From positions 5,208,001 to 5,272,000 of the forward strand of contig OY740804.1 in the NCBI GenBank assembly GCA_963514005.1: a stretch of DNA of 64,000 nucleotides, given 5' to 3'. Below, piece by piece: positions 12,212 through 62,556 of this stretch. Position 1 is the stretch's first letter; each line of letters begins with the position of its first letter. This stretch comes from Raja brachyura. Lineage: Eukaryota. The translations under genes were made by a program, and so were the position numbers. The notes under the pieces are model-generated. The model saw nothing but the letters and a program-made list of their open reading frames with translations. It searched no databases and was not told the origin of the DNA.

Positions 12212-12308
12212 CTGGTGTGAGACCAACAGCGACAAGAACCAACAGAGCGACTGTTCCCCTGGATCTGGGCCGTTTCTGGTGGGTGAATTCTCCCTGTCCC
12301 ACTGCCAT
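12212..12308 (-). CDS. Gene A exon 1 (signal peptide). No downstream Ig exon is recognisable in the window, so the gene is truncated or continues beyond position 1.
   Basis: Intact leader ending ...VGLTP(G) with donor GTAAAT. Intron-1 homology runs to ~9280, then L1-A follows. Confidence 0.65.
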
Positions 12309-13180
12309 GTCTCGGCTGCGTTGGATCGGTTTGGTCCCTGCACTGCATTTGAGTTGTCCTCTTCCTCATTCACAACAGAAGTCAAGCAGTCAATTTCCGT
12401 TTACTCAGGAAACTACTTTGCAGTGGTTCGAGACTAACTTGGTGACTCACTTGCCACCTCCCCCAGTCTCCTCACCACGGACAATGCACCTATCAGGAGT
12501 ACGCTGCAACGCTCTCCTGTTGCCTGGATTGGTGCATCTCCTCGAAGCTCTGCTTCATCCTGGTGACGTTTGCCCGCTTGACTGGCGCTCTGTCCACCAC
12601 CGCAAACATTCCCTTGCCCACCCCCTCAACCCCCTCCCCCAAATGCGGGCACACTGTGTCCGACCTGTATGGGATTAGGAGGCAGAGATCAGCCATGTTT
12701 GAATGGCGAAGTAGACCAGATGGGCCGAATGGCCAAATTCTACTCTTATCACATGACTCTATGAGAAAAATTCATCCATCTTTTATTACATTGGATTATT
12801 TTAATCACTATTCAATGTGCAGGGTTTTACACGGCAATTCATTTGGTAATAAACTTAAAAGTTCACATTCTTGAGAGCCAGCTTTGAGTTCTAGTCTACG
12901 TACTGCTGTCTTTTGGGTTAATGTCAGGATGTACAGATGTGTCTGCAAATATAGGTACAGAATTCGGCCATTTGCTCCATCGAGTCAACTCCACCATTTA
13001 ATCATGGATGTTCTATCTTTCCCCCTCCATCGCATTCTCCTGCCTTCTCCCCACAACTTTTGTCACCCTGAGTAAACCTGTCATTCGCCAATTTAAAAAT
13101 TTCCATTGACTTGGCCTCCACAGCCGTCTGTGGCAATTAATTCCACAGATTCATCACCCCCTGGCTAAAGAAATTCCTCC

Positions 13181-13283
13181 TCAAGTGGTCAAGTTAGATT
13201 GGACATAGGTGGGGTGTGGTGATGCTGTAGGGTCAAGGTGATGAGATTTGTACATCTCCAACTGGTGAACACCCTCTCTGGCC
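13181..13283 (-). CDS. Gene B cytoplasmic tail exon
   Basis: [34 protein letters not shown], acceptor gcttctcag|. Confidence 0.68.
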
Positions 13284-16200
13284 CTGAGAAGCTAAACGAT
13301 GATTATTGGGCGTCATTCCATCAGAATAACAATATTAATATAACGATTACCCTTAATTTTTATCTGATTCTTCTAACGCGTGTCCACAGTTCAATACTTG
13401 TAATCATTTAACCGTTTTTATATCCCCATTGCTCAATGGTTCAATGGTACTTTATTGTCTCATGCACATGGGTACAGTGAAATTTATTTTGCATAGAATT
13501 CAGTCAAAATCTTACTTTATATAAGCACAGCTGAAGCCAAGGACAAGAATATTAATAGCAGATTATACGATGCAGTACACAAGAGTTGCCACACTGGAGA
13601 CGGCACTGGGTGGGAGTTGCAGGGTTCGGCCTGGCCTGGCGATGTTGTCGGTGCCTCCACCACCGCCGCTCCGTGCCGCTGCAGGCCGTGTCCGGTCCGC
13701 GCGCTCGTCCCCGACCTCTGTGGGGCCTCCAGCGGCACCCGATCCACCGGCTGCTGCAGGGCCTCCAGCAGCCCACTCGCACTCAGCCCACACCTCGACC
13801 CACCAACGCACCCTTTTCCCCTCGCCTCCCACGGCCGTCTCCATGCGAGGTGAGGCCCCACCCAGCCAGCTCACCGGCGCTGTTCTTCTCCTCCCTCCAC
13901 CACTGCTGACCCCATCTCCAAGGTCTCGGCTGTTTTTTTCCTTGAATAACAAATAAAATGCAGTTTATAATCTCTACCATCAAATTTTACCCGAGGATAT
14001 GGCCCAGGGCGGCACAGTGGCGCAGCGGTAGAGTTGCTGCCTTACAGCGCCAGAGACCCGGGTTTGATCATGATTACGGGTGCTGTCTGTACGGAGTTTG
14101 TATGTTCTGTCTGTGACAGCGTGGGTTTTCTCCGAGTGCTCCGGTTTCCTCCCACAATCCAAAGACGTGTAGTTTTGTAGGTTAATTGGCCTCTGTATAA
14201 TTGTAAATTGTCCCTCGTGTGTATGATAGTGCGAGTGTACGGGGTGATCATTGGTCGGCGCGGACTTGGTTGGCTGTAGGGTCTAAAGCGCCATCTATAA
14301 TGTTTGTGACAAAGACCCATCATTTATTTATTTGCCTCTGTACTCCACAATTTGAGAATTGCAATAGGAAAAAAGCTCATGTGGTTAAAGTGCACATTGT
14401 CAAATATTAATAAAGGCCATTTTTACACATTTTGGTTTCACCATATAGAAATTACAGCAGTGTTTATACAAAGTACCCCCATTTCAGGGCACCATAATGT
14501 TTGGGACACAACAATGTCATGTAAATGAAAGTAGTCATGTTTAGTATTTTGTTCCATATCCTTTACATGCAATGACTGCTTGAAGTCTCCGATTCATGGA
14601 CATCACCAGTTGCTGGGTGTCTTCTCTGGTGATGCTCTGCCAGGCCTGTATTGCAGCCATCTTTAGTTTATGCTTATTTTGAGGGCGAGTCACATTCAGT
14701 TTTCTCTTCAGCATATAAAAGGCATGCTCAATTGGGTTCAGAATGACTTGGCCACTCAAGAATTGATCATTTTTTAGCTTTGAAAAATTCCTTTGTTGCT
14801 TTTGCAATATGTTTGGAATCATTGTCTTGCTGTAGAATGAATTGCCGGCCTATGAGTTTTGAGGCATTTGTTTGAACTTGAGCAGATAGGATGTGTCTAT
14901 ACACTTCAGAGTTCATTGTGCTACCACCATCAGCAGTTGTATCATCAATGAAGATAAGTGAGTCAGTACTTTCAGCAGCCATGCATGCCCAGGCCATAAC
15001 ACCCCCACCACCGTGTTTCCCAGATGAGGTGGTACGATTTGGATTTTGGGCAGTTCCTCCTCTTGTCCATACTTTGCTCTTGCCATTAATCTGATATAAA
15101 TTAATCTTTGTCTCATCTGTCCACAAGATTTTTTCCAGAACTGTGGTTGCTCTGTTAAGTACTTTGTGGCAAACTGTAACCTGGCCATCCTATTTTTGTG
15201 GTAACCAGTGGTTTGCGTCTTGCAGTGTAGCCTCTGTATTTCTGTTCATGAAGTCTTCTGCGGACAATGGTCATAGCAAATCCGCACCTGACTCCTGAAG
15301 AGTGTTTCTGATCTGTCGGACAGGGTGTTTGGGCTTTTTTCTTTATTATAGAGAGAATTCTTCTGTCATCAGCTGTGGAGGTCTTCCTTGGCCTGCCAGT
15401 CGCTTTGCGATTAGTAAGCTCACCAGTGCTCTCTTTCTTCTTAATGATGTTCCAAACAGTTGATTTTGTTAAGCCTGATGTTTGGCTGGTTTCTAACAGT
15501 TTTATTCTTGTTTCTCAGTCTCATAATGGCTTCTTTGATTTTCATTGGCACAACTTTGGTCCTCATGTTGATAAACAGCAATAAAAGTTTCCAAAGGTGA
15601 TGGAAAGACTGGAGGAAAGACTAGGTGCTGAGAGCTTTCTTGTAACTGCATTAAGGAGGCAATTAAACACACCTGAGCAATTACAAACACCTGAAAAGCC
15701 AGGTCCAAAACATTATGGTGCCCTGAAATGGGGGGACTCTGTATAAACACAGCTGTAATTTCTACATGATGAAACCAAAATGTATAAAAATACCCTGTAA
15801 TAAAATCTGACAATGTGCACTTTAACCACATGTGATTTTTTCTATTACCAATCTCAAATTGTGGAATACAGAGGCAAATAAATAAATGAAGGGTCTTTGT
15901 CCCAAACATTATGGAGGGCACTGAATGTCCACACTTTATCTCTACAATTCTAAAGTAAATTCCCATCATTCCCAATTGAATTTAATGTGAACACCAGAGT
16001 AAAGAGATTGCAAACTTTTACCTTTTAAAAGTTGTCACACAGCTGATGGAAAGCGGGAAGAGAAGCAGAACTCCAAAGAGTACCCAGCGCAACACACCCC
16101 AAACACGGCGAACATTCAGCACGATGTCCCTGGAAATCCAAGGAAATATTATTACTTCCACACAAAGATCAACGCTGGGATTTTTTCTTCATCATATTGC

Positions 16201-19200
16201 ACACGGAATCATTCAGTGTGATCCAAGGTTGTGGCATAGACATCGGTGAGATGTTTATATCGCAACATGCACCCATTCCTTGGAGGTGTTCCATGACCAC
16301 ATACATTAACAACTTAGATTAGATTGACAACAAGAAGGCTGCAACTGACAGTCAACGCACCAACCTGGAGGAGTACGCTGCGTCTGTGTCTGCTTCCATG
16401 GAAAAGTGCATAGAGGATGCCTGTGTCACCAAGACCATCACTATATGGGCCAACCAGAAAACCTGGATGAACCCTGAGGTACGTGCGCGTTTAAATCCCA
16501 TGACTTTGTGGCACTCAGATCCGCAAGAGCCAACCTGAACTGAGTCATCAGGCTGGCAAAGCGCGCCCATGGTCAGAAAATCCAGAGCTTCTTTCATGAT
16601 CCCATGAACACCAGGCGCATGTGGCAGGGAATCAAAACGATCACAGAATATAAGACTGCTCCACCACCCTGTGAAGCCAACATTAACTTCCTCAATGAAC
16701 TTAATAAATATTTTGGATGGTTCGAGGCATTCAACAACACTCCTGCGAGAAAAAGTATTCCTCACTGTGATGAACAGGCACCCAGTCTTGATACAGTGGA
16801 TGTCCGGAGGGCCCTAAAAGGAGTGAACACACGGAAGGCGGCAGGCCCTGATAACATACCAGGCCGGGTGGTCTGGGAATGTGCTGATCAGCTGGCACAT
16901 GTCCTTACTAACATCTTCAACACCTCGCTGGAACCAGGCTGTCGTCCCATCATTTTTCAAGACTACCACTATCATACCAGTGCCAAACAAATCCGCAGTA
17001 ACATGTCTCAACGATTACTGCCCTGTAGCACTCATTCCCATAATGATGAAGTGCTTCGAGAGGCTGGTCAGGGACCATATTGCCTCCAGACTTCCCTCCA
17101 CACTTGACCCATACCAGTCTTGCAGGCCAAACCGCTCCACAGAGGACGCTATATCCTCCGTATTCCATTTGAGCCTGGAACATCTAGAGGAGAAGAACAC
17201 ACATGTGCGAATGCTGTTCATGGACTTTAGTTCAGCGTTCAATACAATTATCCCTCAGCACTTGGTGAGCAAACTGGGTCCATTGGGCCTCAGCACCCCC
17301 TTGTGTAACTGGCTACTGGACTTCCTCACTGACAGACCCCAGTCAGTGCGGGTTGGAAACAACACCTCTAACATCATCTCTCTGAGCACCGGCTCCCCTC
17401 AGGTCTGTGTCCTGAGTCCACTGCTGTTCACCCTGATGACCCACGACTGTTGTGCCAGGTTTAGTACAAACCACATCATGAAGTACGCAGATGACACAAC
17501 AGTGGTGGGCCTCATCCGGGACGACAATGAACTGGCTTACAGGGAGGAGGTGAAACAACTGGTGGATTGGTGCAACACGAACAATTTGATCCTGAATGTT
17601 GAAAAAACAAAGGAGGTCATCGTCAACTTCAGGAAAAACCGGCGTAGTCACACACCAATTCACATTAATGACAGCGATGTGGAGTCGGTCAGTAGCACTA
17701 AGTTCCTGGGGGTGCAGATCACTAACAGTCTGAGCTGGTCAGGAAACATCACATCATTAGTTAAGAGAGCGCAGCAGCGGCTGCACTTTCTGCGCCGGAT
17801 GAGAAGAGCTCACCTCCCCCATCCCGTCCTCACCACTTTCTACAGGGGCACCATAGCGAGCATTCTGACCAGCTGCATCTCTGTCTGGTTTGGAGACTGC
17901 AAAGCCTCCGACTGGAAGTCCGTGCAGAGAGTGGTGAGGACGGCTGAAAACGTTATCGGGACTGCTCTCCCCTCAATCGGGGACATTGCGAGCAAACGTC
18001 GCTTGTCTAAGGCCAGCAGTATTATAAAGGACCCCACACATCTCCACCATGTTCACTCTGCTGCCCTCGGGCAAAAGATATCATAGCATAACGAGCTTAA
18101 CGGCCAGGTTCTGCAACAGCTTCTTCCCTCGAGCCATCAGACTCTTGAATTCCATATAATGGGCCGCCACTATTATCTATTTTATCTTTTTATCCATTTT
18201 TTCTTTTTATACATTTTATTCATTTTACCCTTCTGCTATTTTTGTGGTGCATGGGCAGCCAGATGCATTCAAAATTTCGTCTAGAATTGCATTTACTGAT
18301 GTATTTCTGAATGACAATAAAGTTTTGAATGATTGATTGATGTTCATGTTGGTGGTCAGACATACAGCATGAAAACATGTCATTTGACCCAATTTCCCCA
18401 CGCCGACCAAGATGCCCTTATCAACACTAGTCCCATCTGCCGGCCTTAGATGTTAATGTTGGAAGTATGATTAACGAGTTTACAGATTACGCCAAAATTG
18501 TATCATTTTGGATAGTACCATAATCATAGACCACAGAGGGATAAGAAGCAACTGGTATGTTGGACAGAGCAATGCCAGCAGGTGTTGAACCGTGATAAGT
18601 GTGAAGTTATTTGTTTTTGGCATCAAATAAGGGTAGACATTCACAATGGTAGGGCCACTGGGTGTACTAAGGACTGAGGGACTTTAGTCAGTGCCAAGGA
18701 GTATTTATCAAAGGACTGGAATGTGATCAGCCATGCTTTCTCAAAGTACTGGGACTGATTTTACTGACAACAGGATACGTTTCCCCTCTACTCAAACTTT
18801 CACAACTGAGAAAGGTTGTAGATGGTCACAAAATGCTGGAGTAACTCAGCGGGTCAGGCAGCAGGAATGCTGCCCTCTCCCGACGTAGCAAAGTCCACCT
18901 GGTCTGTACAAACTCCGTACAGGCAGCACCCATAGTCGGGATGGAACACGGGTATCCGGTGCTACAAGCGTTGTAAGGCAGCAAGTCTACCGCTGTGCCA
19001 CCATGCCCACCCCCCCCCTCCCCCCCACATACACACCAAAGTAGTGAGGATATCTGGGTGGCATGTTTGAGACCCTAAAGTGAACATTAAATGTTTAAAA
19101 GCACGTTCTGTGCCACTTTAGTGATGTGTGGGAGATGCTTCAGTTGGGAGCGCTCTTGCTCTGTGTGGGGAGATTCTTGGTTCAAATCCCAATCCAGAGA

Positions 19201-22200
19201 TTTGAGCAAGGATCCTTCCTGGGCCACCATAGATGAACCAAGCCCCTTGATCTAGACATGAGGCTCGCCCATTGAGATGCCAGTGCAGCGGTAGAGTTGC
19301 TGCCTCACGGCAGAGGAGTCCAGGGTTCGATCTTGACTACCGGTGCTGTCACAGCAGAGTTTGTACGTTCTCCTGTGATCGCAAGAGTTTACTCCAGGGT
19401 CTCCAGTTTCCTCGCACATTCCAAAGACGTGCGGGTTTGTAATAAATTGTCCCTCGTGTGTAAAGCAAAATTGGTGAGCGGACCCGGTGGGCCAAAGGGT
19501 CCATTTCCACGCTGTATCTTTTAACTGAGCTGAACTGAACTTAACTAATTTGTTCTTAGGTGAGACTGAGTTGGCTCTTCGAGTTACTAACCTGTTTGGA
19601 AGTATTGAACCAAGAGACTCAGTGGAACTTGCTGCCTCGGTGGTTGGTGCATTTTGAGGCAGGGTGGTCAGAGCCCTTTTGTATATTGTTGCCAAGGTGG
19701 TGGTGACCATATCTGGGCGGCTTGTTTGAGACCCTGGTGGAGATAAAGTGAATGAAGTTTTCGAACATTAAATGTCTGAAACCACGTTCTGTGCAACTTT
19801 AGTGAGGTGGGGGAGATGCCTCAGTTGGGAGCGATCTTGCTCTGTGTGGGGAGATTCCTGGGTTCAAATCCCAATCCAGAGATTTGAGCAAGGATCCTTC
19901 TGAGGCCACCATAGATGGGCCAAGCCTCTTGATCTAGACAGGAGGCTCACCCATTAAGATGCCACAGGATCGCAAGCATCCAGAGACTTCTTTCATGCCC
20001 TTCAGAGTCCCACAGGCTGTGTTATCTTCCTGCTGCTAGAGTTAGGCACATGTCTTCTACATTGGAGAAGAACCTGGGAGCGGGAGGATCCATGGACTAT
20101 TTGCGTTACGCGGAAGGAATTGGAAATAATGCAATTTGGTTGGAGGTATCCACCTGAAACATTAATTCTCGTTCTCTCTCCACAGGTTCATAAGTGATAG
20201 GGGCAGAATTAGGCCATTCGGCCCATTAAGTCTACTCCACCTTTCAATCATGGCTGATCTATCTCTCACTCTCAACCCCATTCTCCTGCCTTCTCCCCAT
20301 ATTGCTTGACTCCCGTACTAATTGAGAACCTGTCAACCCCCACCTTAAAAATACCCAATGACTTGGCCCTCATTGGAAACATGGTAAAAGCTTATCCCTG
20401 TACGTCAGTACAGACGACAACAATAAACTGAGCTCATGAATCACCAAAGTTTGTGAGACACAAGGAATCGCAGGTGCTGGAATCTTAAGCAAAGTGCTGG
20501 AGTAACTCAGCAGGTCAGGCAGCATCTGTGGAAGGAATGAATAGATGATGTGTTGGCTTGGGACCCTTCTTCAGATGTTGTGTGAGTGGTGGGTGTGACA
20601 GTGACGGGCAAGGGGAGAGGGTGAGGGGGCGGTTCCCCCCTTCCCCAGTGAGGGGGCGGCAGAGGTTAAGGTCCCGGAAAGATCGTCTTTGGGGAAATGA
20701 GCCGCCAGCAGCAGAACCGCCGGTCCCCATTGATGACCCCCCCCACCCCACCACGGACCCCCGGGGATGTGGCACCGAGTCACTGTCAGGACTGAGGCCG
20801 GGAATTCCCAGGCTGGAATTTTCACAGCTGGGAGAGTGAGGAGAGATCGTCAACGTACCGTCTGATACCTTGAATGAGAAGGAGGTCCTTTCAGCGATGT
20901 TGAATAATATGTTTATCTCACACCAGTAGAATCCTTCGTCACTCTTCTCCAGGTTGTCGATGGTTACTGAAACTATCCGTTCTGTTTTGTTATCAGTCAT
21001 CGATGTTCTCCCTACTCGTGGGTGATCAGTGGAAACCACGGTAGAAGATAACTGGTAAAAATAACCTTTCCTCCATCGCTTCCTGTTGTCAATGTATTCC
21101 CGACCATACGGACATTCCACAGTGACCGACTGCCCCAACTCTCCCCTCACCTCCTTGGGTCCAGTTATTCCCCTTGACCCTGTTGGCACATTAATGATGA
21201 AAGATCACTCACACTGCAGCACAAGCTGAGTTTTAACAAAAAACATGTCATTTGTGCTGTTCAGACAGGTTCATGGTTTTGCATAGATCATGTGTGGCAA
21301 GGAACTGTAGGTGCTAGTTTACACCAAAGAAAGACACAAAGTGCTGGAGTAACTCAGCGGGACAGGCAGCATCTCTGGAGAAAAAGGATGGGTGTCCTTT
21401 TCGGGTCGGGACCCTTCTTGATCTCCCGGTAGCCAACCCTGTCAACGTCCCTTCCCATTCCCACACTGACCTTTCTGTCCTGGGCCTCCACCATTGCCAG
21501 AGTGAGGCCACATGCAAATTGGAGCAACCACACCTCATATTACGCTTAAGTAGTTTACAACCCAACGGTTTGAACGTTGAATTCTCTAATTTTAAATATC
21601 TTCTACTCACCTGCCTCTCCCCTCCCCCCCCTTGACCCCTTTCTCCACCCTGGTGGGTGAGGGGCCGGTTTCCCCCCACCTGCCCCAGTGAGGGGGCGGC
21701 AGAGATTCTGGTCCCGGAGTGATCGTCTTTGGGGTAATGAGTGGCCAGCAGCAGAACCGCCAGTTGCTGGGACCTTCCGTGGGGCTGGTGTCTGACAGCC
21801 CCCACCCCCCCCCCCCACCCATAATGCTCCTGGGACAGTAGGCAGTTGGTGTGGCCCCACGGGCAAGGACCCCAGTAAATGAGGTATCCACACCCCCCCC
21901 CCCCCCACCCTCACCGCGATCCCCGGGAATGTGGCACCGAGTCACCGTCAGGACCGAGGCCGGAATTCCCAGGCTGGAATTTTCACATCTGGAAGAGTGA
22001 GGAGAGATCATCAACGTACCTTCAGAAACCTTCAATGAGATGGGGGGCGATTCTAAGAGTGAATCTCTTTTGCTTTCTATCATACACCAGTAGAGTCCTT
22101 CATCACTCTTCTCCAGGTTGTCGATGGTTACTGAAACTAACCGTTGTATTTTGTTATCAGTCATCGATGTTCTCCCTCGTTGTGGGTCATCAGTAGAAAC

Positions 22201-24205
22201 CACGGTAGAAGATGACCAGTAATCATCACCTTTACTCCATCGCTTCCTGTTGTCTCTGTATTCCTGACCATACTGACATTCCACAGTGACCGACTGCCCC
22301 AACTCTCCCCTCACATCCCCGGGTCCAGTTATTACCCATGACCCTGTTGGCACATTAATGATGAAAGATCACTCACACTGCAGCAACACAAGCTGAGGTT
22401 TAACAATAAAACACATGTCATTTGTGCTGTTCAGACAGGTTCATGGTTTAGCATAGATCATGTGTAGCAAGGAACTGTAGGTGCTGGTTTACACCAAAGA
22501 TAGACACAAAGAGCTGGAGTAACTCAGCGGGACAGGCAGCATCTCTGGAGAAACCAATGGGTGATGTTTCCTCACCCATTCCTTCTCTCCAGAGATGCTG
22601 CCCGTCCCGCTGAGTTACTCCAGCATTTTGTGTCTCTCTTCTTTTGCATAGATCCTGTTGCACTTTAATGCTTTTCCCGCTGGTGTTAATTCCCATTTCA
22701 CCGGGATTGTTCCCCAAGTTCCAGTGAAAGCAGAACCAAGAAGGGTCTCGACCCGAAATGTCGCCTATCTCCTTCGCTCCTTAGATGCTGCTGCACCCGC
22801 TGAGTTTCTCCAGCTTTTTGTGTAACCCTAGATTCTCCAGCATCTGCAGTTCCTTCTTTAACACTGTTTCTGAATCTACCTGGCGCCCAGATCCTCCTTC
22901 CCTGTGGGCGTGGCTTGACCTGAGTGGTGGTCATGTGACAGGAAGCCAACGTGTCACTCACTCTGACCCACCCCGTGTTCAATCTCATTACAACCCACTT
23001 CCCCATTGAACTAGTAGAAACAAGGAACTGCAGATGCTGGTTAATACACAAAAGGACACTAAATGCTGGAGTAACGCAGCGGGTCAGGCGGCATCTCTGG
23101 AGAGAAGCAATGGGTGACGTTTCGGGTCGAGACCCTTCTTCAGACCAACAGTCAGCGAGGGAGGAAGTCAAGAGATATGCAAGGGGTAAAGCATTTAGCT
23201 GATCTGCTGTCAAGTCACTGAGAAAGTTCACCTGGAGATAGTTTGCACCAGAATAGTGGAGCAAACTCTCTGGTCTGGGGGCAAGAGTTACCACTACACC
23301 CATAATCACCAAGGCCAGCTTTTCTACAGGGAGTTAGCTGTGTGCAATTTGGATGCGCACAGCTACACAACAGTTATTAGTGCAGGAAAAAACAAGTCTG
23401 CAAGCACTTTATCTTTAGCAGCTCATAGCCCAGTAGTCTGCTCTGTGGCTCAAAATAATTCAAGGTGCTAGTAAATAATTCTGAAGAACAGATCATAAGT
23501 TAATTAGTACTAGAGCAGAATTAGGCCATTTGGCCCATCAAGTCTACTCTCCATCATTCAATCATGGCTGATCTACCTTTCCCTCTCAACTAAATCCTCC
23601 TGCCTTCTCCCCAGGACTCCTGACACCAGTACTGATCAAGAATCTATCCATCTGCCTTAGAAATATCTATTGGCTTCCACAGCATTCTGTGGCAATGAAT
23701 TCCACAGTTTCACCACCCTTGACTAAAGAAATTCCTCCTCATCTCCTTCCAAAAGGAATGTCCTTTAATTCTGAGGCTGCGACCTCTGGTCCTAGACTCT
23801 CCTACTAGTGGAAACATCCTCACCCCATCCACTCTATCCAGGACGTTCACTATTCGGTAAGTTTCAGTGAGGTCCACAAGGCAAGCTGTAGGTAGTTATC
23901 TCCCTTCTCCACAGGTAGCTAGCTGTGTGCAATTTGGCTGCACACAACACGACAACAACCGCTGATGGAAGTCTCTACAGGAACTGACGAGTGTTGAGCA
24001 ATTTATCCTCAGCTCCGCACACAGTACAGAGAGTCTGTGGTTACAAATAATTCAAGGCGCTGGTAAATAATTCCAAAGAACAGAGCATTTTGTAAAACAA
24101 CGATTTACCTGATGTGAGACCAACAGCGACAAGAACCAACAGAGCGACTGTTCCCCTGGATCTGGGCCGTTTCTGGTGGGTGAATTCTCCCTGTCCCACT
24201 GCCAT
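13181..24205 (-). CDS. Gene B: 6-exon CD300/pIgR-like receptor with two tandem Ig-V exons, 364 aa if both are used. Exons 24205-24109, 22343-22020, 21179-20859, 19733-19592, 16129-16022, 13283-13181
   Basis: GT-AG introns with compatible phases. Exon lengths sum to 1095 nt with no internal stop. Every exon is homologous to gene C. Confidence 0.8.
14008..14283 (+). mobile_element. tRNA-derived SINE. Other copies: ~19280-19530 +, ~27095-27285 +, ~45680-45940 -, ~53950-54245 -, ~56985-57245 -, and partial copies ~50255-50420 - and ~60247-60410 -
   Basis: A box TGGCGCAGCGG, B-box-like GGTTTGATC/GGTTCGATC, and shared body sequence. Confidence 0.85.
14286..15923 (-). mobile_element. Tc1-family DNA transposon, defective, in gene B intron 5 (TM to tail)
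   Basis: ~220-bp IR/DR-type inverted repeats ending CAGTGCCCTCC. Transposase fragments [34 protein letters not shown]. Confidence 0.92.
16022..16129 (-). CDS. Gene B transmembrane exon
   Basis: [36 protein letters not shown] with intact AG and GT sites. Confidence 0.85.
16320..18341 (+). mobile_element. 5'-truncated Rex1/Babar-clade LINE in the gene B stalk-TM intron
   Basis: [30 protein letters not shown], (TTGA)n tail. Empty site present at ~58190-58200. Confidence 0.9.
18455..18700 (+). mobile_element. Old degenerate CR1 RT fragment
   Basis: Decayed homology to the ISKFADDTKI...WAEQWQ..FN.DKCEV region. Confidence 0.5.
19592..19733 (-). CDS. Gene B stalk exon
   Basis: 142 nt, i.e. 15 nt shorter than gene C and in frame. 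[47 protein letters not shown]. Confidence 0.83.
20859..21179 (-). CDS. Gene B Ig-V exon D2
   Basis: 321 nt, phase 1-1. [23 protein letters not shown]...[27 protein letters not shown]. Confidence 0.93.
21420..21600 (+). mobile_element. Penelope-like element remnant (GIY-YIG endonuclease C-terminus) between the two Ig exons of gene B
   Basis: Translates to LPVA...[49 protein letters not shown]. Confidence 0.75.
22020..22343 (-). CDS. Gene B Ig-V exon D1
   Basis: 324 nt, phase 1-1. [23 protein letters not shown]...[28 protein letters not shown]. Confidence 0.93.
23111..23148 (-). ncRNA. Minimal hammerhead motif in gene B intron 1, sense orientation
   Basis: Identical to the 43701-43738 motif, on the minus strand. 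Confidence 0.65.
24109..24205 (-). CDS. Gene B exon 1, signal peptide
   Basis: [32 protein letters not shown](G), 97 nt, donor GTAAAT. Confidence 0.82.
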
Positions 24206-50000: not shown

Positions 50001-50254
50001 ATGACTACTTTCATTTACATGTCTTTGCTGTGACCCAAACATTATGGTGCCCTGAAATGGGGGGACAATGTATAAACACTGCTGTAATTTCTATATGGTG
50101 AAACCAAAATATATAAAAATGCCCTTTATTAAAATCTGACAATTTGCACTTTAACCACATGTGATGTTTTTCTATTACAATTCTCAAATTGTAGAGAACA
50201 GAGGCAAATAAAATAAATTATAGGTCTTTTTCCCAAACATTATGTAGGGCACTG
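47070..50254 (+). mobile_element. Tc1 transposon, paralogous copy, interrupted by a CR1
   Basis: TA-CAGTGCCC...GGGCACTG-TA with degenerate transposase. Confidence 0.92.
47912..49406 (-). mobile_element. Young 5'-truncated CR1 LINE nested in the Tc1
   Basis: Uninterrupted 468-aa RT ORF (NYRPVSLTS, DFSKAFD, GVPQGSVLGP, YADD) and (ATGGTTAT)n tail. Absent from the other two Tc1 copies. Confidence 0.95.
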
Positions 50255-52457: not shown

Positions 52458-52554
52458 ATGGCGGTGGCACAGGGAGAATTCACCCACCAGAAACGGCCCA
52501 GATCCAGGGGAACAGTCGCTCTGTTGGTTCTTGTCGCTGTTGGTCTCACATCAG
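52458..52554 (+). CDS. Gene C exon 1, signal peptide [32 protein letters not shown](G)
   Basis: Kozak-like gacATGG, basic n-region, hydrophobic h-region, and phase-1 donor G|GTAAAT that joins the Ig exon as ...LTSGSWG-ITGP. Confidence 0.82.
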
Positions 52555-55500
52555 GTAAATCGTTGTTTTACAAAATGCTCTGTTCTTTAGAATTATTTAC
52601 CAGCGACTTGAATTATTTGTAACCACAGACCTCTCTGTACTGTGTGGGGAGCTGATGATAAATTGCTCAACACTCGTTAGTTCCTGTAGAGACTTCCATC
52701 AGCGGTTGTTGTCGTGTTGTGTGCAGCCAAATTGCACACAGCTAGCTCCCTGGGGAGAAGGGAGATAACTACCTACAGCTTGCCTTGTGGACCTCACTGA
52801 AACATACCAAATAGTGAACGTCCTGGATAGAGTGGATGGGGTGAGGATGTTTCCACTAGTGGGAGAGTCTAGGACCAGAGGTCGCAGCATCAGAATTAAA
52901 GGACATTCCTTTAGGAAGGCGATGAGGAGGAATTTACTTATTCAATGGTGGTGAAACTGTGGAATTCATTGCCACATAATGCTGTGGAGGCTGTCAATAT
53001 ATATTTCCAAGGCAGAGGTAGATAGATTTGTGATTAGTACAAGTGTTAGGAGTCATGGGGAGAAGGCAGGAGGATTGAGTTGAGAGGGAAAGGTAGATCA
53101 GCCATGATTGAATGGTGGAGAGTAGACTTGATGGGCCAAATGGCCTAATTCTGCTCCTAGTACTAATGAACTTATGATCTGTTCTTCAGAATTATTTACT
53201 AGCACCTTGAATTATTTTGAGCCACAGAGCAGACCACTGTGCTACGAGGTGCTAAAGATAAAGTGCTTGCAGACTTGTTTTTTCCTGCACTAATGACTGT
53301 TGTGTAGCTGTGCGCATTCAAATTGCACACAGCTAACTCCCTGTAGAAAATGACCCGAGAGCTGGCCTTGTTGATTATGGGTGTAGGGGTAACTCTTGCC
53401 CCCAGACCAGAGAGTTTGCTCCACTATTCTGGTGCAAACTATCTCCAGGTGAACTTTCTCAGTGACTTGACAGCAGATCAGCTAAATTCGTCTTGTGGCT
53501 TGTGAGCGGACCTGGACTGATCTGATCATGTGTCTCCACCCCAGCTCCCGAATCTGCAGAGTTTCACATGTGTTAGAGTCATAGAGTGATACAGTGTGGA
53601 AACAAGCCCTTCGGCCCAACTTGCCCGCACCGGCCAAAACGTCTCAGCAACACTTGTCCCACCTGTCCACGTTTGGTCCAAGTCCCTTCAAACATGTCCT
53701 ATCCATGTACCTGTCTAACTGATTCGTAAATGATGGGATAGTCCCTGCCTCAACTACCTCCTCTAGAGCTGGTGTTATTCAGTAGGTCAGGCAGTATCTC
53801 ATGGTCTTGACTTGAAACGTCAATGTTCTCCACAGATGCTGCCTGACCTACTCATTCACCACAGGCAACTGGCTATTCAGCTTTAGTAAAACACAAAGTG
53901 CTGGAGTAACACTGCAGGTCAAGCTGCATCTCTTGGTGACTTTCCTTTAGTGACTTTAGAGATACAGCACGGAAACAGGCCCTTTGGCCCATCAAGTCCA
54001 CGCCGTCCAGTGATCACCTGACACACTAACACTACCCTACACACGAGGAGCAAATTACAATTTTAACTGAAGCCAATTAACCTACAAACCTGCACGTCTT
54101 TGGAGTGTGGGAGGAAACTGGAGCACCCGGAGAAAGCCCGCGCTGTCACGGGGAGAACGTACAAACTCCATACAGACAGCACCCGAGGTCAGGGTCAAAC
54201 ATGGGTCTCTGGCGCTGTTAGGCAGCAACTCTACCCCTGTGCCTCCATGTCTCTACCCGTAACGTTACCTATCCAAGTTCTCCAGCGATGTTGCCTGACC
54301 CGCTGAGCCATCACAGGCAGCTGGCTAAGCAGCTTTAGTAAAGCACAAAGTGCTGGAGTAAATCAGCAGGACAGGCAGCATCTCTGGAGAACATGGATAG
54401 GTGACGTTTAGGGTTGGGACCTGAATAAGCGGTAGGCCATTTAGGACTCAGATGAGGAACAACCTTTTCACCCAGAGAGTTCCACTTTCTCCAGAGATAG
54501 TTCCTGACCCGTTGAGTTACTCCAGCACTTTGTGTCCTTTTGTGTATTAACCAGCATCTGCAGTTCCTTCTTTCTACTAGTTCAATGGGGAAGTGGGTTG
54601 TAGTGAGATTGAACACTGGGTGGGTCAGAGTGAGAGACACGTTGGCTTCCTGTCACATGACCACCACTCAGGTCAAGCCACACCCACAGGGAAGGAGGAT
54701 CTGGGCGCCAGGTAGATTCAGGAGCAGTTCTGCTTTCACTGGAACTTGGGGAACAATCCCGGTGAAATGGGAATTAACACCAGCGGGAAAAGCATTAAAG
54801 TGCAACAGGATCTATGCAAAAGAAGAGAGACACAAAATGCTGGAGTAACTCAGCGGGACGGGCAGCATCTCTGGAGAGAAGGAATGGGTGAGGAAACATC
54901 ACCCGTCGGTTTCTCCAGAGATGCTGCCTGTCCCGCTGAGTTACTCCAGCTCTTTGTGTCTATCTTTGGTGTAAACCAGCACCTGCAGTTCCTTGCTACA
55001 CATGCCCTATGTGAAACCATGAACCTGTCTCAACAGCACAAAGGACATGTTTTTTATTGTTAAACCTCAGCTTGTGTTGCTGCAGTGTGAGTGATCTTTC
55101 ATCATTAATGTGCCCACAGGGTCATGGGGAATAACTGGACCCGGGGAGGTGAGGGGAGAGTTGGGGCAGTCAGTCACTGTGGAATGTCAGTATGGTCGGG
55201 AATACAGAGACAACAGGAAGCGATGGAGGAAAGGTGATTATTACCTGCCATCTTCTACCGTGGTTTCTACTGATGACCCACAACGAGGGAGAACATCGAT
55301 GACTGATAGCAAAACACAACAGATAGTTTCAGTAACCATCGACAACCTGGAGAAGAGTGATGAAGGACTCTACTGGTGCGAGATAGACATATCATTCAAC
55401 ATCGATGAATCGACCTCCATCTCATTGAAGGTTTCTGAAGGTACGTTGACGATCTCTCCTCACTCTCCCAGATGTGAAAATTCCAGCCTGGGAATTCCCG

Positions 55501-58500
55501 GCCTCGGTCCTGACAGTGACTCGGTGCCACATCCCTGGGGGTCCGTCGGGGGGGGGGTGAGGGGTTTGGGGCAGGTGAGAGGGGGGTAGGGTGGAACCGC
55601 TGCATGGGGCCACACCAGGAGCCCACTGTCCCAGAAGCAGTGTGTTTTTGAGGGGGGGGGGGGGAGCTCATCAATGGGGACCGGCGGTCCTGCTGCTGGC
55701 GGCTCATTACTCCAAAGACAATCTCTCCGGGACCAGAACCTCTGCTGCCCCAGGGGCAGGGAGGGGGGGGGGGGGGGGGGGGGGAAGGGGGAAAGCCCCC
55801 TCACACTCTCCCCCTGCCCGTCACTGTCACACCCACCACTCACACTACATCTGAAGAAGGATCCCAACCCTAAACATCGTCTATTCATTCCTTCCACAGA
55901 TGCTGCCTGACCTGCTGAGTTACTCCAGCACTTTGTGTTTTGCTTAAGATTCCAGCACCTGCAATGCCTGTGTCTCACAAACTTTGGTGATTCATGAGCT
56001 CAGTTTATTGTTGTCGTCTGTACCGACGTACAGGGAAAACCTTTTACCATGTTTTCAATGAGGGCCAAGTCATTGGGTATTTTTAAGGTGGAGATTGACA
56101 GGTTCTCCATTAGTACGGGAGTCAAGCGATATGGGGAGAAGGCAGGAGAATTGGGTTGAGAGGGAGAGATACTGTAGTTCAGCCATGATTGAAAGGCGGA
56201 GTAGACAAAAATGGGACAAATGGCCTCATTCTGTCCCTATCACATGAACATGACCGAAGAATCCTCATGAGATGAGTGATATAGACTTTACACTGAGCCA
56301 CACAAACTGTACAAGATGAGATACTCAACAGTTCGGACAGCATCTGTGGAGAGAGAACGAGAGTTAATGTTTCAGGTAGATACCTCCAACCAAATTGCAT
56401 TATTTCCAATTCAGTCCGCGTAACGCAAATAGTCCATGGATCCTCACACTCCCAAGTTCTTCTCTAACGTAGAAGACATGTGCCTCACTCTAGCAGCAGG
56501 AAGATAACACAGCCTGTGTGACTGAAGGGCATGAAAGAAGTCTCTGAATGCTTTCGACCATACAGTGGCATCTTATAGGGTGAGCCTCCAGTCTAGATCA
56601 AGAGGCTTGGTTCATCTATGGTGGCCTCAGAAGGATCTTTGCCCAATTGTCTGGAGTGGGATTCAAACAAAGAATCTCCCACACTCCACTAAAGTGGCAC
56701 AGAACGTGCTTTCAGACATTTAATGTTCAAAAACTTCATTTTCTTTATCTCCACAAGGGTCTCAAACACACCGCCCAGACATGGTCACCACCACCTCTAC
56801 AACAATAAGCACAAGGGCTTCCACCACAACCACTCTGACCACCCTGACTCAAGGTGCACCAACCGCAAAGGAAGCAAGTTCCACTGAGGCTTCTGGTTCA
56901 GCACCTCCAAACAGGTTAGTAACTCGAAGAGCCAACTCAACCTCACCTGAGAACAAATTAGTTAAGTTCAATTCAGCTCGGTTTAAAGATACAGTGTGGA
57001 AATGGACCCTTTGGCCCGCTGAGTCAGCTCTGAGCAGCGATCACCCCATACACCAGTTCTGTTCTACACACTAGGGGCAATTTACTACAAACCCGCACGT
57101 CTTTGGAATGTGGGAGGAAACTGGAGAACCCAGAGTAAACTCTTGCGATCACAGGGAGAACGTACAACTCTGCTCTGACAGCACCGGTAGTCAGGATCGA
57201 ACTCGGGTCTCCTGCGCTGTGAGGCAGCAACTCTACCGCTGCGCTGACATTTCAATGTGTGAGCCTCATGTCTAGATCACGGGGCTTGGTCCATCTATGG
57301 TGGCCTAGGAAGGATTCTTGCTCAAATCTCTGGATTGGGATTCGAACCAAGAACCTCCCCACACAGAGCAAGAGCGCTCCCAACTGTTTCATCTCCCACA
57401 CACAGGGCCGGATAAGCTAGACAAGCTTAAGCTTAAGGCCTTGAGATCTAGGGGGGCATACTCACCTTGCTGCCTCACCAGACCCGTTAAACCTCGCCGT
57501 CCCACCGACCATCCGCCCACCGGGACCTCCAACTCTTTGCCAGCTGACACTGGCCACTCCACCGCCCTCCAGCAGCCCGCAGCCATCGCCGTACCTGCAG
57601 CCTGGACAGCACCGGGCCTGAAGCTTCCACGCTGCAGACTCCCACTCCCCCCGGGTTTGACAGCACTGGCTCCTAGTGCTAGTCAGCCAACCCTGGTAAT
57701 CTCAGTGGCTGTTCCACTGGGTTTTCCCCATTCCCCTCAAACCATGTGACCCCAGCTCTTCCCCACCCAAAGTAATTGAAGTAATTTAATTAAATAGATC
57801 CTGGAAAACCAATAACCATTGGTGAAAAACCAGTCCAGGCATTACATTTTGGGCTTCAGCCCCATCCTACCCTTTGGGCTTCTACCCCAACCTAACTGTG
57901 TGTTAGTTGTCAGTGCGTGATGTGTGTGTAGGAGGGAGAGAAGGGAGGGAGGGAGGGAGAGAAGGGAGGGAGGGAGGGAGGAAGGACAGAAGGGAGGGAG
58001 GGAGGGAAGGAGAGAAAGAAGGGATGGAGCGAATGAGGGAAGGGAAAACAGAGAGGAGGGAGGGAGAGAAGAGAGGGAGGGAGGGAAGAAGGCCGGCAGA
58101 TGGGACTAGTGTAGATAACGGCATCCTGGTCATCGTGAGGAAATTGGGTCAAAGGACATGTTTTCGTGCTGTATGTCTGACCACCAACATGAACATCTAA
58201 GTTGTTAATGTATGTGGTCATGGAACACCTCCAAGGAATGGACGCATGTTGCGATATAAACTTCTCACCAATGTCTAAGCCGCAACCGTGGATCACACTG
58301 AATTAGTCCGTGTGCAATATGATGAAACAAAATTCCCAGCGTTGATCTGTGATAACTCTGTGTGGAAGTAATAATATTTCCGTGGATTTCCAGGGACATC
58401 GTGCTGAATGTTCGCCGTGTTTGGGGTGTGTTGCGCTGGGTACTCTTTGGAGTTCTGCTTCTCTTCCCGGTTTCCATCTGCTGTGTGACAACTTTTAAAA

Positions 58501-61289
58501 GGTAAAAGTTTGCAATCCCTTCACTCTGGTGTTCACATTAAATTCAATTGGGAATGATGGGAATTTACTTTAGAATTATAGAGATAAAGTGTGGACATAC
58601 AGTGCCCTCCATAATGTTTGGGACAAAGACCCTTCATTTATTTATTTGCCTCTGCATTCCACAATTTGAGATTTGTAATAGAAAAAAAACACATGTGGTT
58701 AAAGTGCACGTTGTCAGATTTTATTAAAGGGGATTTTTATACATTTTGATTACACCATGTAGAAATTACAGCTGCGTTTATACAGTCCCCCCATTTCAGG
58801 GCACCATAATGTTTGGGACACATGGCTTCACAGGTGCTTGTAATTGCTCAGGTGTGTTTAATTGCCTCCTTAATGCAGTTACAAGATTGTACTCAGCACC
58901 TAGTTTTTCCTCCAGTCTTTCCACCACCTTTGGAAACTTTGATTGCTGTTTATCAGCATGAGAACCAAAGTTGTGCCAATTCTTGAAAATCAAAGAACCC
59001 ATTATGAGACTGAGAAACAAGAATAAAACTGTTACAGACATCAGCCAAACCTTAAAGCTTGCCAAAATCAACAGTTTGGAACATCATTAAGAAGAAAGAG
59101 AGCACTGGTGAGCTTACTAATCGCAAGGGACTGGCAGGCCAAGGAAGACCTCCACAGCAGATAACAGAAGAATTCTCTCTATAATAAAGAAACCCCCCCC
59201 AAACACCTGTTCGACAGATCAGAAACACTCTTCAGGAATCAGGTGTGGATTTGTCAATAACCACTGTACACAGAAGAATTAATGAACAGAAATACAGAGG
59301 CTACACTGCAAGATGCAAACCACTGGTTACCCACAAAATAGGATGGCCGGATTACAGTTTGCCAAGAAGTACCTAGAGCAACCACAGTTCTGGAAAAAGA
59401 TCTTGTGGATAGATAAGACGAAGATTAACTTATATAAAAGTAATGGCAAGAGAAAAGTATGGAGAAGAGAAGGAACTGCCCAAGATCCTAAGCCTAACAC
59501 CTCATCTGTGAAACACGGTGGTAGAGGTGTTATGGCCTGGGCATGCATGGCTGCTGAAGGTACTGACTCGCTTATCTTCATTGATGATACAACTGCTGAT
59601 GGTAGTGGCATGATGAATTCTGAAGTGTATAGACACATCCTATCTGCTCAGGTTCAAACAAATGCCTCCAAAAACCCACAGGTGGCAGTTCATTCTACAC
59701 AAAGACACTGATTTCAAACATATTGCAAAAGCAACAATGGAATTTTTCAAAGCTAAAAAATGATCAATTCTTTTCTGGCCAAGTCATTGTTAACACAATT
59801 AAGCATGCCATTTATATGCTGAAGAGAAAACTGAAAGGGACTAGCCCCCTTAAAAAGCCTAAGCTAAAGATGGCTGCAATACAGGCCTGGCAGAGCATCA
59901 CCAGAGAAGACACCCAGCAACTGGTGATGTCTATAAATCACAAAGTTCAAGCAGTCATTGCATGCAAATGATTTGCAACAAAATACTAAACATGACTACT
60001 TTCATTTACATGTCTTTGCTGTGACCCAAACATTATGGTGCCCTGAAATGGGGGGACAATGTATAAACACTGCTGTAACTTCTACATGGTGAAACCAAAA
60101 TGTATAAAAATGCCCTTTATTAAAATCTGACAATGTGCACTTTAACCACATGTGATTTTTTTTCTATTACAATTCTCAAATTGTGGAGAACAGAGGCAAA
60201 TAAAATAAATGATGGGTCTTTTTCCCAAACATTATGTAGGGCGCTGTAGGCCCTACAGCCGACCAAGTCCGCGCCGACCAATGATCACCCCGTACACTCG
60301 CACTATCATACACACGAGGGACAATTTACAATTATACAGAGGCCAATTAACCTACAAAACTACACGTCTTTGGATTGTGGTAAGAAACCGGAGCATCCGG
60401 CGAAAACCAGGTGGTAGAGATTACAAACTGTATTTTAATTGTCATTCAAGGAAAAAAGCAGCCGAGACCTTGGAGATGGGGTCAGCAGTGGTGGAGGGAG
60501 GAGAGGAACAGCGCCGGTGAGCTGGCTGGGTGGGGCCTCACCTCGCATGGAGACGGCCGTGGGAGGCGAGGGGAAAAGGGTGCGTTGGTGGGTCGAGGTG
60601 TGCGCGGAGTGTGAGTGGGCTGCTGGAGGCCCTGCAGCAGCCGGTGGGTCAGGTGCCGCTGGAGGTCCCACAGCGGTCGGGGACGAGTGCGTGGATTGGA
60701 CACGGCCTGCAGCGGCACGGAGCGGCGGTGGAGGCACCGACAACATCGCCAGGCCAGGCCGAACCCTGCAACTCCCACCCAGTGCCGTCTCCACGACAAC
60801 GGGCCTTTAAGCCCAAAATAAGACTCTACTTTTTTACCAATTTGATATTTTAAAGAATATAGATACCACCAGAAATGTGGCAACTCTTGTGTACTGTATT
60901 ATATAATCTGCTATTAATACTCTTGTTCTTAGCTTCAGCTGTGCTTATATAAAGTAAGATTTTGACTGAATTCTATGCAAAATAAATTTCACTGTACCCA
61001 TGTGCATGAGACAATAAAGTACCATTGAACCATTGAGCAATGGGGATATAAAATGGTTACATGATTACAAGTATTGAACTGTGGACACACGTTAGAAGAA
61101 TAAGATAAAAATTAAGGGTAATCATTTTATATCAATATTGTTATTCTGATGGAATGTCGCCCAATAATAATCGTTTCGCTTTTCAGGGCCAGAGAGGGTG
61201 TTCACCAGTTGGAGATGTACAAATCTCATCACCTTGACCCTACAGCATCACCACACCCCACCTATGTCCAATCTAACTTCACCACTTGA
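52458..61289 (+). CDS. Gene C: complete 5-exon CD300/pIgR/TREM-like (MDIR-type) single-Ig-V type I membrane receptor, 261 aa. Exons 52458-52554, 55120-55440, 56758-56914, 58394-58501, 61187-61289
   Basis: All introns are GT-AG with matching phases (1,1,2,2). Exon lengths sum to 786 nt with no internal stop. Domain order is signal peptide, V-set Ig (TVEC...W...DxGLYWC), S/T stalk, TM, tail. Each exon is conserved in paralogous units. Confidence 0.82.
54644..54686. promoter_or_regulatory. Candidate intronic enhancer or alternative promoter: ETS + E-box + AGGTCA + CACCC cluster; paralog at ~22903-22948
   Basis: ggCTTCCTGTCACATGACcaccactcAGGTCAagCCACACCC. Confidence 0.4.
55120..55440 (+). CDS. 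Gene C exon 2, V-set Ig domain, CD300/pIgR-like
   Basis: Acceptor cccacag|, donor |gtacgt, 321 nt, phase 1-1. Sequence [21 protein letters not shown]...KRW...[18 protein letters not shown]...ISLKVSE. Confidence 0.93.
56758..56914 (+). CDS. Gene C exon 3, Thr/Ser-rich mucin-like stalk
   Basis: Acceptor ttctttatctccacaag|, donor |gttagt, phase 1-2. [52 protein letters not shown]. Confidence 0.85.
57930..58092 (+). repeat. Purine-rich (GGGA/GGAA)n low-complexity tract; paralog at ~46633-46772
   Basis: Seen directly in the sequence. Confidence 0.9.
58394..58501 (+). CDS. Gene C exon 4, transmembrane segment with intramembrane Arg
   Basis: Acceptor gatttccag|, donor |gtaaaa, phase 2-2. [36 protein letters not shown]. 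Confidence 0.85.
58600..60246 (+). mobile_element. Tc1 transposon, paralogous copy in gene C intron 4
   Basis: 1.65 kb, TA-flanked inverted repeats, frameshifted transposase. Confidence 0.92.
61187..61289 (+). CDS. Gene C exon 5, cytoplasmic tail to stop codon
   Basis: Acceptor gtttcgcttttcag|, phase 2. [34 protein letters not shown]. Conserved in four units, with AATAAA ~400 nt downstream. Confidence 0.68.
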
Positions 61290-61683
61290 GGAGGAATTTG
61301 TTTAGGCAAAGGGTGATGAATCTGTGGAATTCATTGCCACAGATGGCTGTGGAGGCCAAGTCAATGGATATTTTTAAATTGACAGGTGTCAAAGAGATTG
61401 ACAGGTGTCAAAGATTGAGGGGAGAAGGCATGAGAATGGGATGGAGGGGGAAAGATAGATCATCCATGATTGAATGGTGAAGTAGACTTGATGGAGCAAA
61501 TGGCCGAATTCTATACCTATGTTTGTAGACACATCTGTACATCCTGACATTCACCCAAAAGACAGCAGTACATAGACTTTAACTCAAAGCTGGCTCTCCA
61601 GAATGTGAACTTTTAACTTTATTACCAAATGAATTGCTGTGTAAAACACTACACATTGAATAATGATTAAAATAATCCAATGT

Positions 61684-61689
61684 AATAAA
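61684..61689 (+). terminator. Candidate polyadenylation signal of gene C (paralogs 51692-51697 + and 12782-12787 -)
   Basis: AATAAA ~400 nt after the stop, at a conserved position in three units. Confidence 0.45.
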
Positions 61690-62459
61690 AGATGGCAGAA
61701 TTTTTGTCATAAAGTCATAAGTGATAAGAGTAGAATTAGGCCATCAAGTGTACTCCGCCATTCAATCATGGCTGACCTATCTCTTCCTCCCAACCCCATT
61801 CTCCTGCCTTCTCTCCATAACCTCTGACCCATGTACTAATTAGTAGTTAAGAATCTATCTGTTGTTTATCTGGTGACGTGAGTGGACTTACCTGATCACG
61901 TTTGGCGTTGTCTTATTTCTCCTGGGTAACGTTTCAACACATGAGAAGCTGAGGAAGGCTGGACAAATTAGTGACGCACATTTTGAGGTGGGTAAACAGG
62001 TCACAAGTTCACACATTCCAGGAGTGGAATTTGGCCATTCAGCCCATTGAGTCTACTCAGCCATTCAAACATGGCTGATCTCTGCCTCCTAATCCCATAC
62101 AAGTTCAGACACAGTGTGCCCGCATTTGGGGGAGGGGGGTGAGGGGGTGGGCAAGGGAATGTTTGCGGTGGTGGACAGAGTGCCAGTCAAGCGGGCAAAC
62201 GTCACCAGGATGAAGCAGAGCTTCGAGGAGATGCTCCAATCCAGGCAACAGGAGAGCATTGCAGCGCACTCCTGATAGGTGCGTTGTGCGTGGTGAGGAG
62301 GCTGGGGGAGGTGGCAAGTGAGTCACCAAGTTAGTCTCGAACCACTGCAAAGTCGTTTCCTGAGCAAACGGAAATTGACTGTTTGACTTCTGTTGTGAAT
62401 GAGGAAGAGGACAACTCAAACGCAGTGCAGGGACCAAACCGATCCAACGCAGCCGAGAC

Positions 62460-62556
62460 ATGGCGGTGGGACAGGGAGAATTCACCCACCAGAAACGGCC
62501 CAGATCCAGGGGAACAGTCGCTCTGTTGGTTCTTGTCGCTGTTGGTCTCACATCAG
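62460..62556 (+). CDS. Gene E exon 1 (signal peptide); the gene presumably continues past the window end
   Basis: Intact 97-nt leader exon 10,002 nt downstream of the gene C leader. Intron-1 homology runs to position 64000. Confidence 0.75.

Follow-up and report, generated by a model that had tools for sequence, protein, structure and literature searches.

CD300-type receptors are paired activating and inhibitory immunoglobulin (Ig) receptors which tune mammalian myeloid and natural killer (NK)-like cells, and their deep history is poorly mapped. Among the mammalian members, the transmembrane (TM) charge of CD300b, c, d and e is a Lys or a Glu. In skates, a multigene system has already been described in the form of the modular domain immune-type receptors (MDIR) of the clearnose skate, which are described as an activating and inhibitory Ig receptor family likened to CD300, TREM, FCAR and the polymeric immunoglobulin receptor (pIgR) (Cannon et al. 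2006, cited in PMC3031540). The subject of the present analysis is a cluster of CD300/pIgR-like ('CMRF35-like') receptor genes in the skate Raja brachyura, two of which, gene B and gene C, look intact. It lies in a 64,000-nucleotide (nt) stretch of contig OY740804.1 (assembly GCA_963514005.1, positions 5,208,001 to 5,272,000 of the forward strand), and this whole stretch, which contains no runs of N, is called the window.

MDIR1 reportedly has a positively charged TM residue, and the domain number in its family is said to range from one to six; the MDIR domains are reportedly called I- or C2-set, fall into four subfamilies and are distantly similar to CD300/pIgR. Compared with MDIR by description only, the domains of the window differ in forming one V-set subfamily clearly similar to CD300/pIgR, and both systems have a variable Ig number within a skate multigene family (one and two V exons in the window). 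No protein named MDIR was among the matches of the protein name searches, and the reason may be either absence of the family from the collection or true distance. With the mammalian CD300 molecules (CD300f/CLM-1, CD300a and CD300c), the locus shares a V-set domain which is closest to theirs in sequence and fold, the plan of leader, V domain, stalk and TM segment, and the organization as a clustered multigene family with charged-TM short-tail members and members whose tails carry an immunoreceptor tyrosine-based inhibitory motif (ITIM). The differences are that the identity is only 30–33%, that W-R-K stands in place of W-C-K, that multi-Ig members exist in skates, and that the TM charge is an Arg in W-x-x-L-R-W. 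With pIgR, the locus shares the V-domain superfamily, and gene B has two domains, as teleost pIgR has; pIgR, both in the mammalian five-domain and in the teleost two-domain form, differs from the charged TM, the very short tail and the many paralogues found here, and its per-domain similarity is below that of CD300f. The nearest likeness is to the elasmobranch RefSeq relatives, which have the same leader (94–100% identity), V domain (61–75%), stalk and Arg TM exon (91–97%) and fall in the same skate clade; they are automatic predictions without functional study. This is not a new kind of system, since RefSeq relatives exist in three skates and the skate MDIR family was published in 2006; the window supplies exon-level models for two predicted activating-type members in a skate, and it displays both the growth of such an array (unit duplication, inversion and V-exon duplication) and its decay (V-exon deletion and retroelement insertion).

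The presence of CD300/pIgR-like receptor genes at this locus is confirmed and lies far beyond chance, because each full V exon is called V-set by Pfam at 1e-11 to 1e-13 and is matched by skate RefSeq proteins. The best explanation overall, with a probability of roughly 0.7, is a CD300/pIgR-like cluster in which B and C are intact predicted activating receptors that end at the terminal exon called (a) below. According to this explanation, the window would be part of a large multigene cluster, whose units of about 10–12 kb would have multiplied around an L1 stack, both as tandem and as inverted copies, giving two intact-looking units, C with one V exon and B with two (the second from a 1.16-kb internal duplication), and two dead ones, D and X. 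The product would be a type I membrane protein, made with a signal peptide and carrying one or two Ig domains of the V-set, a Ser/Thr stalk of the O-glycosylation type, a TM segment with an Arg near its outer end, and a short tail. The V domain may bind its ligand via the variable B-C, C-C′ and F-G regions, and the TM Arg may pair with an acidic TM residue of an adaptor with an immunoreceptor tyrosine-based activation motif (ITAM) of the FcR-gamma, CD3-zeta or DAP12 type, while the inhibitory arm would be represented by uncharged-TM, ITIM-tail relatives in other species. The exons of the two genes from the leader to the TM segment are as follows:

52458–52554, plus strand: gene C exon 1, start codon and signal peptide (ATG, hydrophobic core, donor GTAAAT; 32 codons plus 1 nt)
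55120–55440, plus strand: gene C exon 2, V-set Ig, 321 nt, phase 1-1 (Pfam V-set 1.5e-13)
56758–56914, plus strand: gene C exon 3, Ser/Thr-rich stalk (AG/GT sites)
58394–58501, plus strand: gene C exon 4, juxtamembrane and TM segment with the conserved Arg (hydropathy peak)
24109–24205, minus strand: gene B exon 1, leader (homology, skate protein match)
22020–22343, minus strand: gene B exon 2, V domain 1 (B-D1), 324 nt, phase 1-1 (Pfam V-set 3.9e-13)
20859–21179, minus strand: gene B exon 3, V domain 2 (B-D2), 321 nt, phase 1-1 (Pfam V-set 2.9e-11)
19592–19733, minus strand: gene B exon 4, stalk, 142 nt (homology, frame, splice sites)
16022–16129, minus strand: gene B exon 5, TM segment with Arg (homology, frame, TM motif)

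The exons of gene B were positioned by homology to those of gene C, and the spliced models were joined so that frame, length and hydropathy could be checked, hydrophobic segments being located with a Kyte-Doolittle scan. Single exons or natural ORFs served as queries in all searches. An earlier note on this DNA, made from the letters alone, had proposed a one-Ig receptor of 261 amino acids (aa) for C and a two-Ig receptor of 364 aa for B, and both models were reproduced exactly, with GT-AG at every junction. On the plus strand, the five exons 52458–52554, 55120–55440, 56758–56914, 58394–58501 and 61187–61289 join in frame (phases 1, 1, 2, 2), and the model is hydrophobic in its leader and in one other segment; on the minus strand, 24205–24109, 22343–22020, 21179–20859, 19733–19592, 16129–16022 and 13283–13181 give an open frame with two V exons. 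The same note had said that the list of open reading frames (ORFs) exposes only the Ig and stalk exons, as read-through ORFs, and this is borne out: the V exons appear only within 55110–55589 (+), 21607–22353 (−) and 20515–21189 (−), and Ser/Thr-rich stalk exons within 56781–57074, 45476–45769 and 19252–19710. The second V exon of gene B comes from a 1164-nt tandem duplication which begins about 190 nt upstream of the exon and includes its own acceptor and donor. Both V exons of this gene (20859–22343) are of phase 1-1, so that the skipping of either keeps the frame; more generally, since the V exons are phase 1-1 cassettes, exon duplication or loss would alter the domain number with the frame unbroken.

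In the comparison with solved structures (PDB) per domain, the V domain scores 54 bits with CD300f/CLM-1 (1.5e-13), 36 bits with pIgR D5 and about 24 bits with NKp44/TREM2 (about 3e-4). The lowest whole-sequence E in the PDB belongs to pIgR (2.6e-28), because five weak domain hits are summed in it. NCBIfam, a prokaryote-centred library, gave no match. The AlphaFold model of the gene C V domain has a predicted local distance difference test (pLDDT) score of 94.3, and its Foldseek ranks 1–10 are all CD300lf/CD300f, with query-normalised TM-scores of 0.89–0.93; mouse CD300lf is best (0.91, 32–33% identity). After CD300lf come human CD300f, teleost pIgR, CD300a, human pIgR D1 and CD300c in that order, and the first TREM2 and TREM1 matches stand at ranks 35 and 39. 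An identity of the V domain with TREM/NKp44 was considered and rejected, as its E is about 3e-4 against 1e-13 for CD300f and its Foldseek ranks are lower. B and C both have the exon plan of leader, phase 1-1 V exon(s), stalk, TM and tail, and both combine a charged TM with a short tail lacking signalling motifs; both are members of the broad CD300/pIgR V-set receptor superfamily and represent the form that has a charged TM and a short tail. The family and the leader/V/stalk/TM/tail architecture named in the earlier note are supported. Flanking marker genes which could indicate CD300-locus synteny were not found in the window.

The C-C′ disulfide of CD300, pIgR and TREM has lost both of its cysteines here: W-[RS]-K stands in each of the three V exons, and C′ contains no Cys. 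Both cysteines are kept in Mobula and Hemitrygon, and one in Narcine and in the Amblyraja radiata protein P0004. Since ray relatives keep one or both, the absence of this disulfide is a secondary loss within the lineage.

The relatives are labelled P0001 and so on among 175 fetched proteins; P0001, P0003 and P0004 are A. radiata XP models, P0009 is Leucoraja erinacea XP_055510911.1, and P0157 and P0158 come from Rhinoraja longicauda. The RefSeq proteins of A. radiata named "CMRF35-like molecule 3" have 368 aa with two Ig domains, and 226 and 246 aa with one; "polymeric immunoglobulin receptor-like" of L. erinacea has 468 aa and three. Protein name searches gave further relatives in R. longicauda and in many rays and sharks, and distant CMRF35-like or pIgR-like matches came from sturgeon, paddlefish, a rodent, a teleost and a caecilian. 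The number of V domains in a relative ranges from one to four, and in the multi-domain proteins examined from skates it is two to four. When the skate proteins were aligned to the window by tblastn, leader (86–100% identity), V (61–75%), stalk and TM (84–94%) matches fell at the predicted exon coordinates, which is independent support for exons 1–4; the skate RefSeq matches on leader, V, stalk and TM exons range from E 6e-8 (stalk) to 1e-56 (V exons). Specifically, the gene C leader is 94–97% identical to the N-termini of P0001 and P0004, its stalk 65–82% identical to the stalks of P0001, P0003, P0004 and P0009, and its TM 91–97% identical to that of P0004 and P0009. Neither B nor C is matched identically by any of the fetched relatives. 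Annotated members of the family exist in three other skates, and B and C add to these known CD300/pIgR-like receptors; the description of the cluster as hidden and likely missed by annotation is not supported, as RefSeq lists closely related proteins of equal exon plan from A. radiata, L. erinacea and R. longicauda.

When 81 V domains were placed in a maximum-likelihood tree, those of the window, three in number, fell inside a skate-only clade (support 100/98), which is nested in the batoids (100/82) and then in the sharks, and the rodent CMRF35-like protein stands outside the fish clades. B-D2 pairs with D2 of the two-Ig A. radiata protein P0001 (99/95), and C pairs with B-D1 (92/72). These pairings indicate that the domain types are older than the split from A. 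radiata, each order having its own expansion, as birth-and-death evolution would lead one to expect. The birth-and-death evolution suggested in the earlier note agrees with a young array of tandem and inverted units about 94–97% identical, the dead copies D and X and the skate-only clade; as the note had supposed, the V domains group with CD300/pIgR types and not with an unrelated family.

The TM exons at 58394–58501, 16022–16129 and 46864–46971 carry the motif W-x-x-L-R-W-[VIL]-L-F, which in genes B and C reads W-x-x-L-R-W-V-L-F, with the Arg in VLRWVLFG. This core has been kept not only by skates but also by stingrays, Narcine, sturgeon and paddlefish (P0099, P0177 and P0037 for the last two). 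An Arg in the outer third of the TM helix marks receptors coupled to FcR-gamma or CD3-zeta, such as Fc-alpha-RI, LILRA, OSCAR, GPVI and NKp46. The conserved TM Arg and the short tails without ITIM or ITAM point to an activating, adaptor-coupled reading, in which B and C would be the activating arm of a paired family. In the relatives P0158, P0159, P0005, P0006 and P0017, the TM is uncharged and the tails contain V-I-Y-T-T-V or V-V-Y-x-x-[IV]; exons of these kinds were not found in this window. The deep conservation of the Arg TM module is the most interesting by-product of the analysis, and as an old conserved module it may help in the search for the adaptor that partners it in early jawed vertebrates. 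It is conceivable, though we hold it doubtful, that the Arg TM exon (W-x-x-L-R-W-[VIL]-L-F ... P ... C) is an adaptor-docking module which arose before cartilaginous and bony fishes diverged, marking an ancestral activating CD300/pIgR branch kept in skates, rays, sturgeon and paddlefish, and that skates exchange phase 1-1 V cassettes between activating and inhibitory backbones, whereby ligand-matched pairs would arise. Such an exchange is suggested because B-D2, which in gene B is combined with an Arg TM, groups with D2 of P0001, whose TM is uncharged.

For the 3′ end, three candidate terminal exons come into question:

60451–60520, plus strand: gene C candidate terminal exon (a), 22-aa tail then stop, giving a 250-aa model; acceptor TCAAG/G in the right phase
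13871–13940, minus strand: gene B candidate terminal exon (a), giving a 353-aa model
61187–61289, plus strand: gene C candidate terminal exon (b), that of the earlier note, 33-aa tail then stop, giving the 261-aa model; acceptor TTTCGCTTTTCAG/G, in frame
13181–13283, minus strand: gene B candidate terminal exon (b), that of the earlier note, giving the 364-aa model
62104–62275, plus strand: gene C candidate terminal exon (c), a 56-codon ORF, with the next leader about 190 nt further downstream; acceptor ACAAG/T in phase

Tail (a) maps to 60451–60520 in C, 13940–13871 in B and 50459–50528 in unit D, and the C-termini of P0004 and P0009 (K-R-K-[KR]-T-A-x-T-L-E-M-x-S-A-V-V-E-E-G-x-E-Q-R-R) match it. 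Tail (c) matches the C-terminus of the pIgR-like protein P0157 (79% identity, E 9e-13), and this ORF upstream of the leaders is either a third option for the last exon or a mistaken annotation in R. longicauda. The candidate tails measure 22–56 aa and all lack ITIM and ITAM, and (a) and (c) are also without tyrosine. The last exon is most likely 60451–60520 in C and 13940–13871 in B rather than the one first proposed, and, judged from the sequence comparisons, candidate (a) at 60451 ranks provisionally above (b) at 61187 and (c) at 62104. As a separate observation, a conserved ORF of about 56 codons stands just upstream of every leader in the window, at 62104–62275, 52104–52273, 12502–12654 (−) and 24393–24512 (−).

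Variation was compared over 21 skate V domains. Their framework is nearly invariant, with entropy peaks at positions 23–36, 39–45 and 87–97, and the core Ig residues Cys22, Trp35, Asp80, Gly82, Tyr84 and Cys86 are invariant in all of them. Among the V exons of the window, a single in-frame 3-nt difference is the only change of length. Where the tip of the F-G hairpin is encoded, a hot spot of 57 nt (55361–55417 in C against 22100–22041 and 20938–20882 in B) is 61–68% identical, between flanks of 93–98%. The intron 5′ of the C V exon, together with about 240 nt at the start of that exon, is nearest B-D1 (about 95%), while the hot spot is nearer B-D2 (86% vs 68%), a pattern consistent with gene C being a mosaic. 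Diversifying selection is not claimed, as the ratio of nonsynonymous to synonymous substitution rates (dN/dS) is not significant; only a local hot spot is reported.

It is unlikely that the 261-aa and 364-aa models are the true mRNAs, ending at 61187–61289 in C and 13283–13181 in B. Exon (b) does have the best-looking acceptor, each of its four copies is open in the correct phase, and it is followed about 380 nt downstream by ATTAAA and AATAAA; however, it has no match in any of the 175 relatives, of which P0004 and P0009 end at the sequence of 60451–60520 and P0157 at that of 62104–62275, and two AATAAA signals, at 60981 and 61013, stand after tail (a) and before it. Moreover, exon (b) is equally intact in the dead units, so that its open frame does not show that it is used. 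Still less probable is the view that B and C are recent duplicates, silent or in decay and intact only from lack of time, with the working genes elsewhere in the cluster. The dN/dS of about 1–2, not significantly above 1, the dead D and X alongside, the introns full of retroelements and the lack of RNA evidence among the sequencing runs matched would all suit decay, but frame, splice sites and start codon are preserved throughout the exons of B and C from leader to TM and in each candidate terminal exon, the Ig core residues are invariant over the 21 sequences, the lone V length change is in frame, and the differences cluster at the F-G tip, unlike the even scatter under drift. It is very improbable that B and C are the cartilaginous-fish counterpart of pIgR, moving polymeric Ig across epithelia, with B resembling the two-domain teleost pIgR. 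NCBI labels several relatives 'polymeric immunoglobulin receptor-like', pIgR has the lowest whole-sequence E in the PDB, and the fold agrees well with that of the teleost pIgR ectodomain; pIgR, on the other hand, needs a long sorting tail, and B and C have neither the uncharged TM nor the long sorting tail that would identify it. They have a charged residue in or at the TM and tails of 22–56 aa, of which (a) and (c) are without tyrosine and (b) without ITIM or ITAM, the per-domain scores favour CD300f (54 bits against 36), and the family consists of dozens of paired copies, not of one gene.

Several points weigh against the preferred explanation, that is, two intact activating receptors ending at exon (a). 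The tail ORFs stay intact in the dead units D and X, so the openness of a tail frame is no evidence of exon use and cannot choose among the candidates. The RefSeq relatives are themselves predicted models. The most hydrophobic 19-residue window begins after the Arg, which may thus sit at the membrane boundary. Among the three V exons of the window, dN/dS is 1.1–2.0, not significantly above 1 (one-sided Fisher p 0.07–0.53), and variable sites are not enriched outside the predicted (DSSP) strands (p 0.68); with neither test significant, the data fit relaxed constraint too. Among the sequencing runs matching the gene C V exon, none is on record as RNA, and the four runs aligned to 55300–61295 gave DNA contigs over exons and introns alike, repeat-dominated and with no listed joint at the proposed junctions.

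As for the layout of the locus, self-comparison shows plus-strand units of about 10 kb in tandem (43.2–53.5 kb and 53.0–63.5 kb) and minus-strand units of about 11.9 kb spanning 10.8–25.7 kb; the two sets are mutually inverted and mostly 94–97% identical. The remaining features of the window are as follows:

12212–12308, minus strand: lone leader exon of a further minus-strand gene (homology placement)
62460–62556, plus strand: lone leader exon of the next plus-strand gene, which runs off the window end (homology placement)
45219–51297, plus strand: unit D, dead copy without leader; V exon cut after about 86 nt (45219–45304)
45453–45609, plus strand: unit D stalk, intact
46864–46971, plus strand: unit D TM exon, intact
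50459–50528, plus strand: unit D tail (a), intact
51195–51297, plus strand: unit D tail (b), intact
24788–25622, minus strand: relic X, nothing but the tail exons of a unit's 3′ end
25622 to about 25554, minus strand: relic X tail (a), with a 1-nt deletion
24890–24788, minus strand: relic X tail (b), intact ORF
26000–43190 (bounds approximate), between the minus and plus arrays: AT-rich stack of L1-type retroelements (GC 0.28–0.38; endonuclease and reverse transcriptase ORFs; repeat families D1–D6)

Besides B and C, there are four partial units, namely the two lone leaders, unit D and relic X. The earlier note had spoken of four partial or pseudogenised units; all four were found, while two of them consist of a leader only and cannot be counted as dead. 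Downstream of the leader at 12308–12212, the proteins of the relatives match no more gene sequence in the window, only an L1 piece at 6415–6642, so its V exon lies outside. Neither this leader nor that at 62460–62556 has a further exon within the window. In unit D, unrelated sequence replaces the remainder of the V exon after about 86 nt, and a reverse transcriptase element is inserted at 47996–49402.

Antisense ORFs of 137–153 aa run across each leader, at 52124–52549 (−), 62105–62551 (−), 12217–12678 (+) and 24114–24527 (+); no Pfam family matches them, and chance read-through of a GC-rich, well-conserved segment is their most likely origin. Reverse transcriptase ORFs (Pfam RVT_1) also lie within introns, that at 16881–18086 (+) in the stalk–TM intron of B and that at 47996–49402 (−) being specific to unit D. 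Tc1/mariner-like transposase remnants, without a Pfam match at 1e-3, occupy the same position of the TM–tail intron in B (14300–15200), D (49400–50250) and C (59300–60250), and this shared position indicates that they were inserted before the unit duplication.

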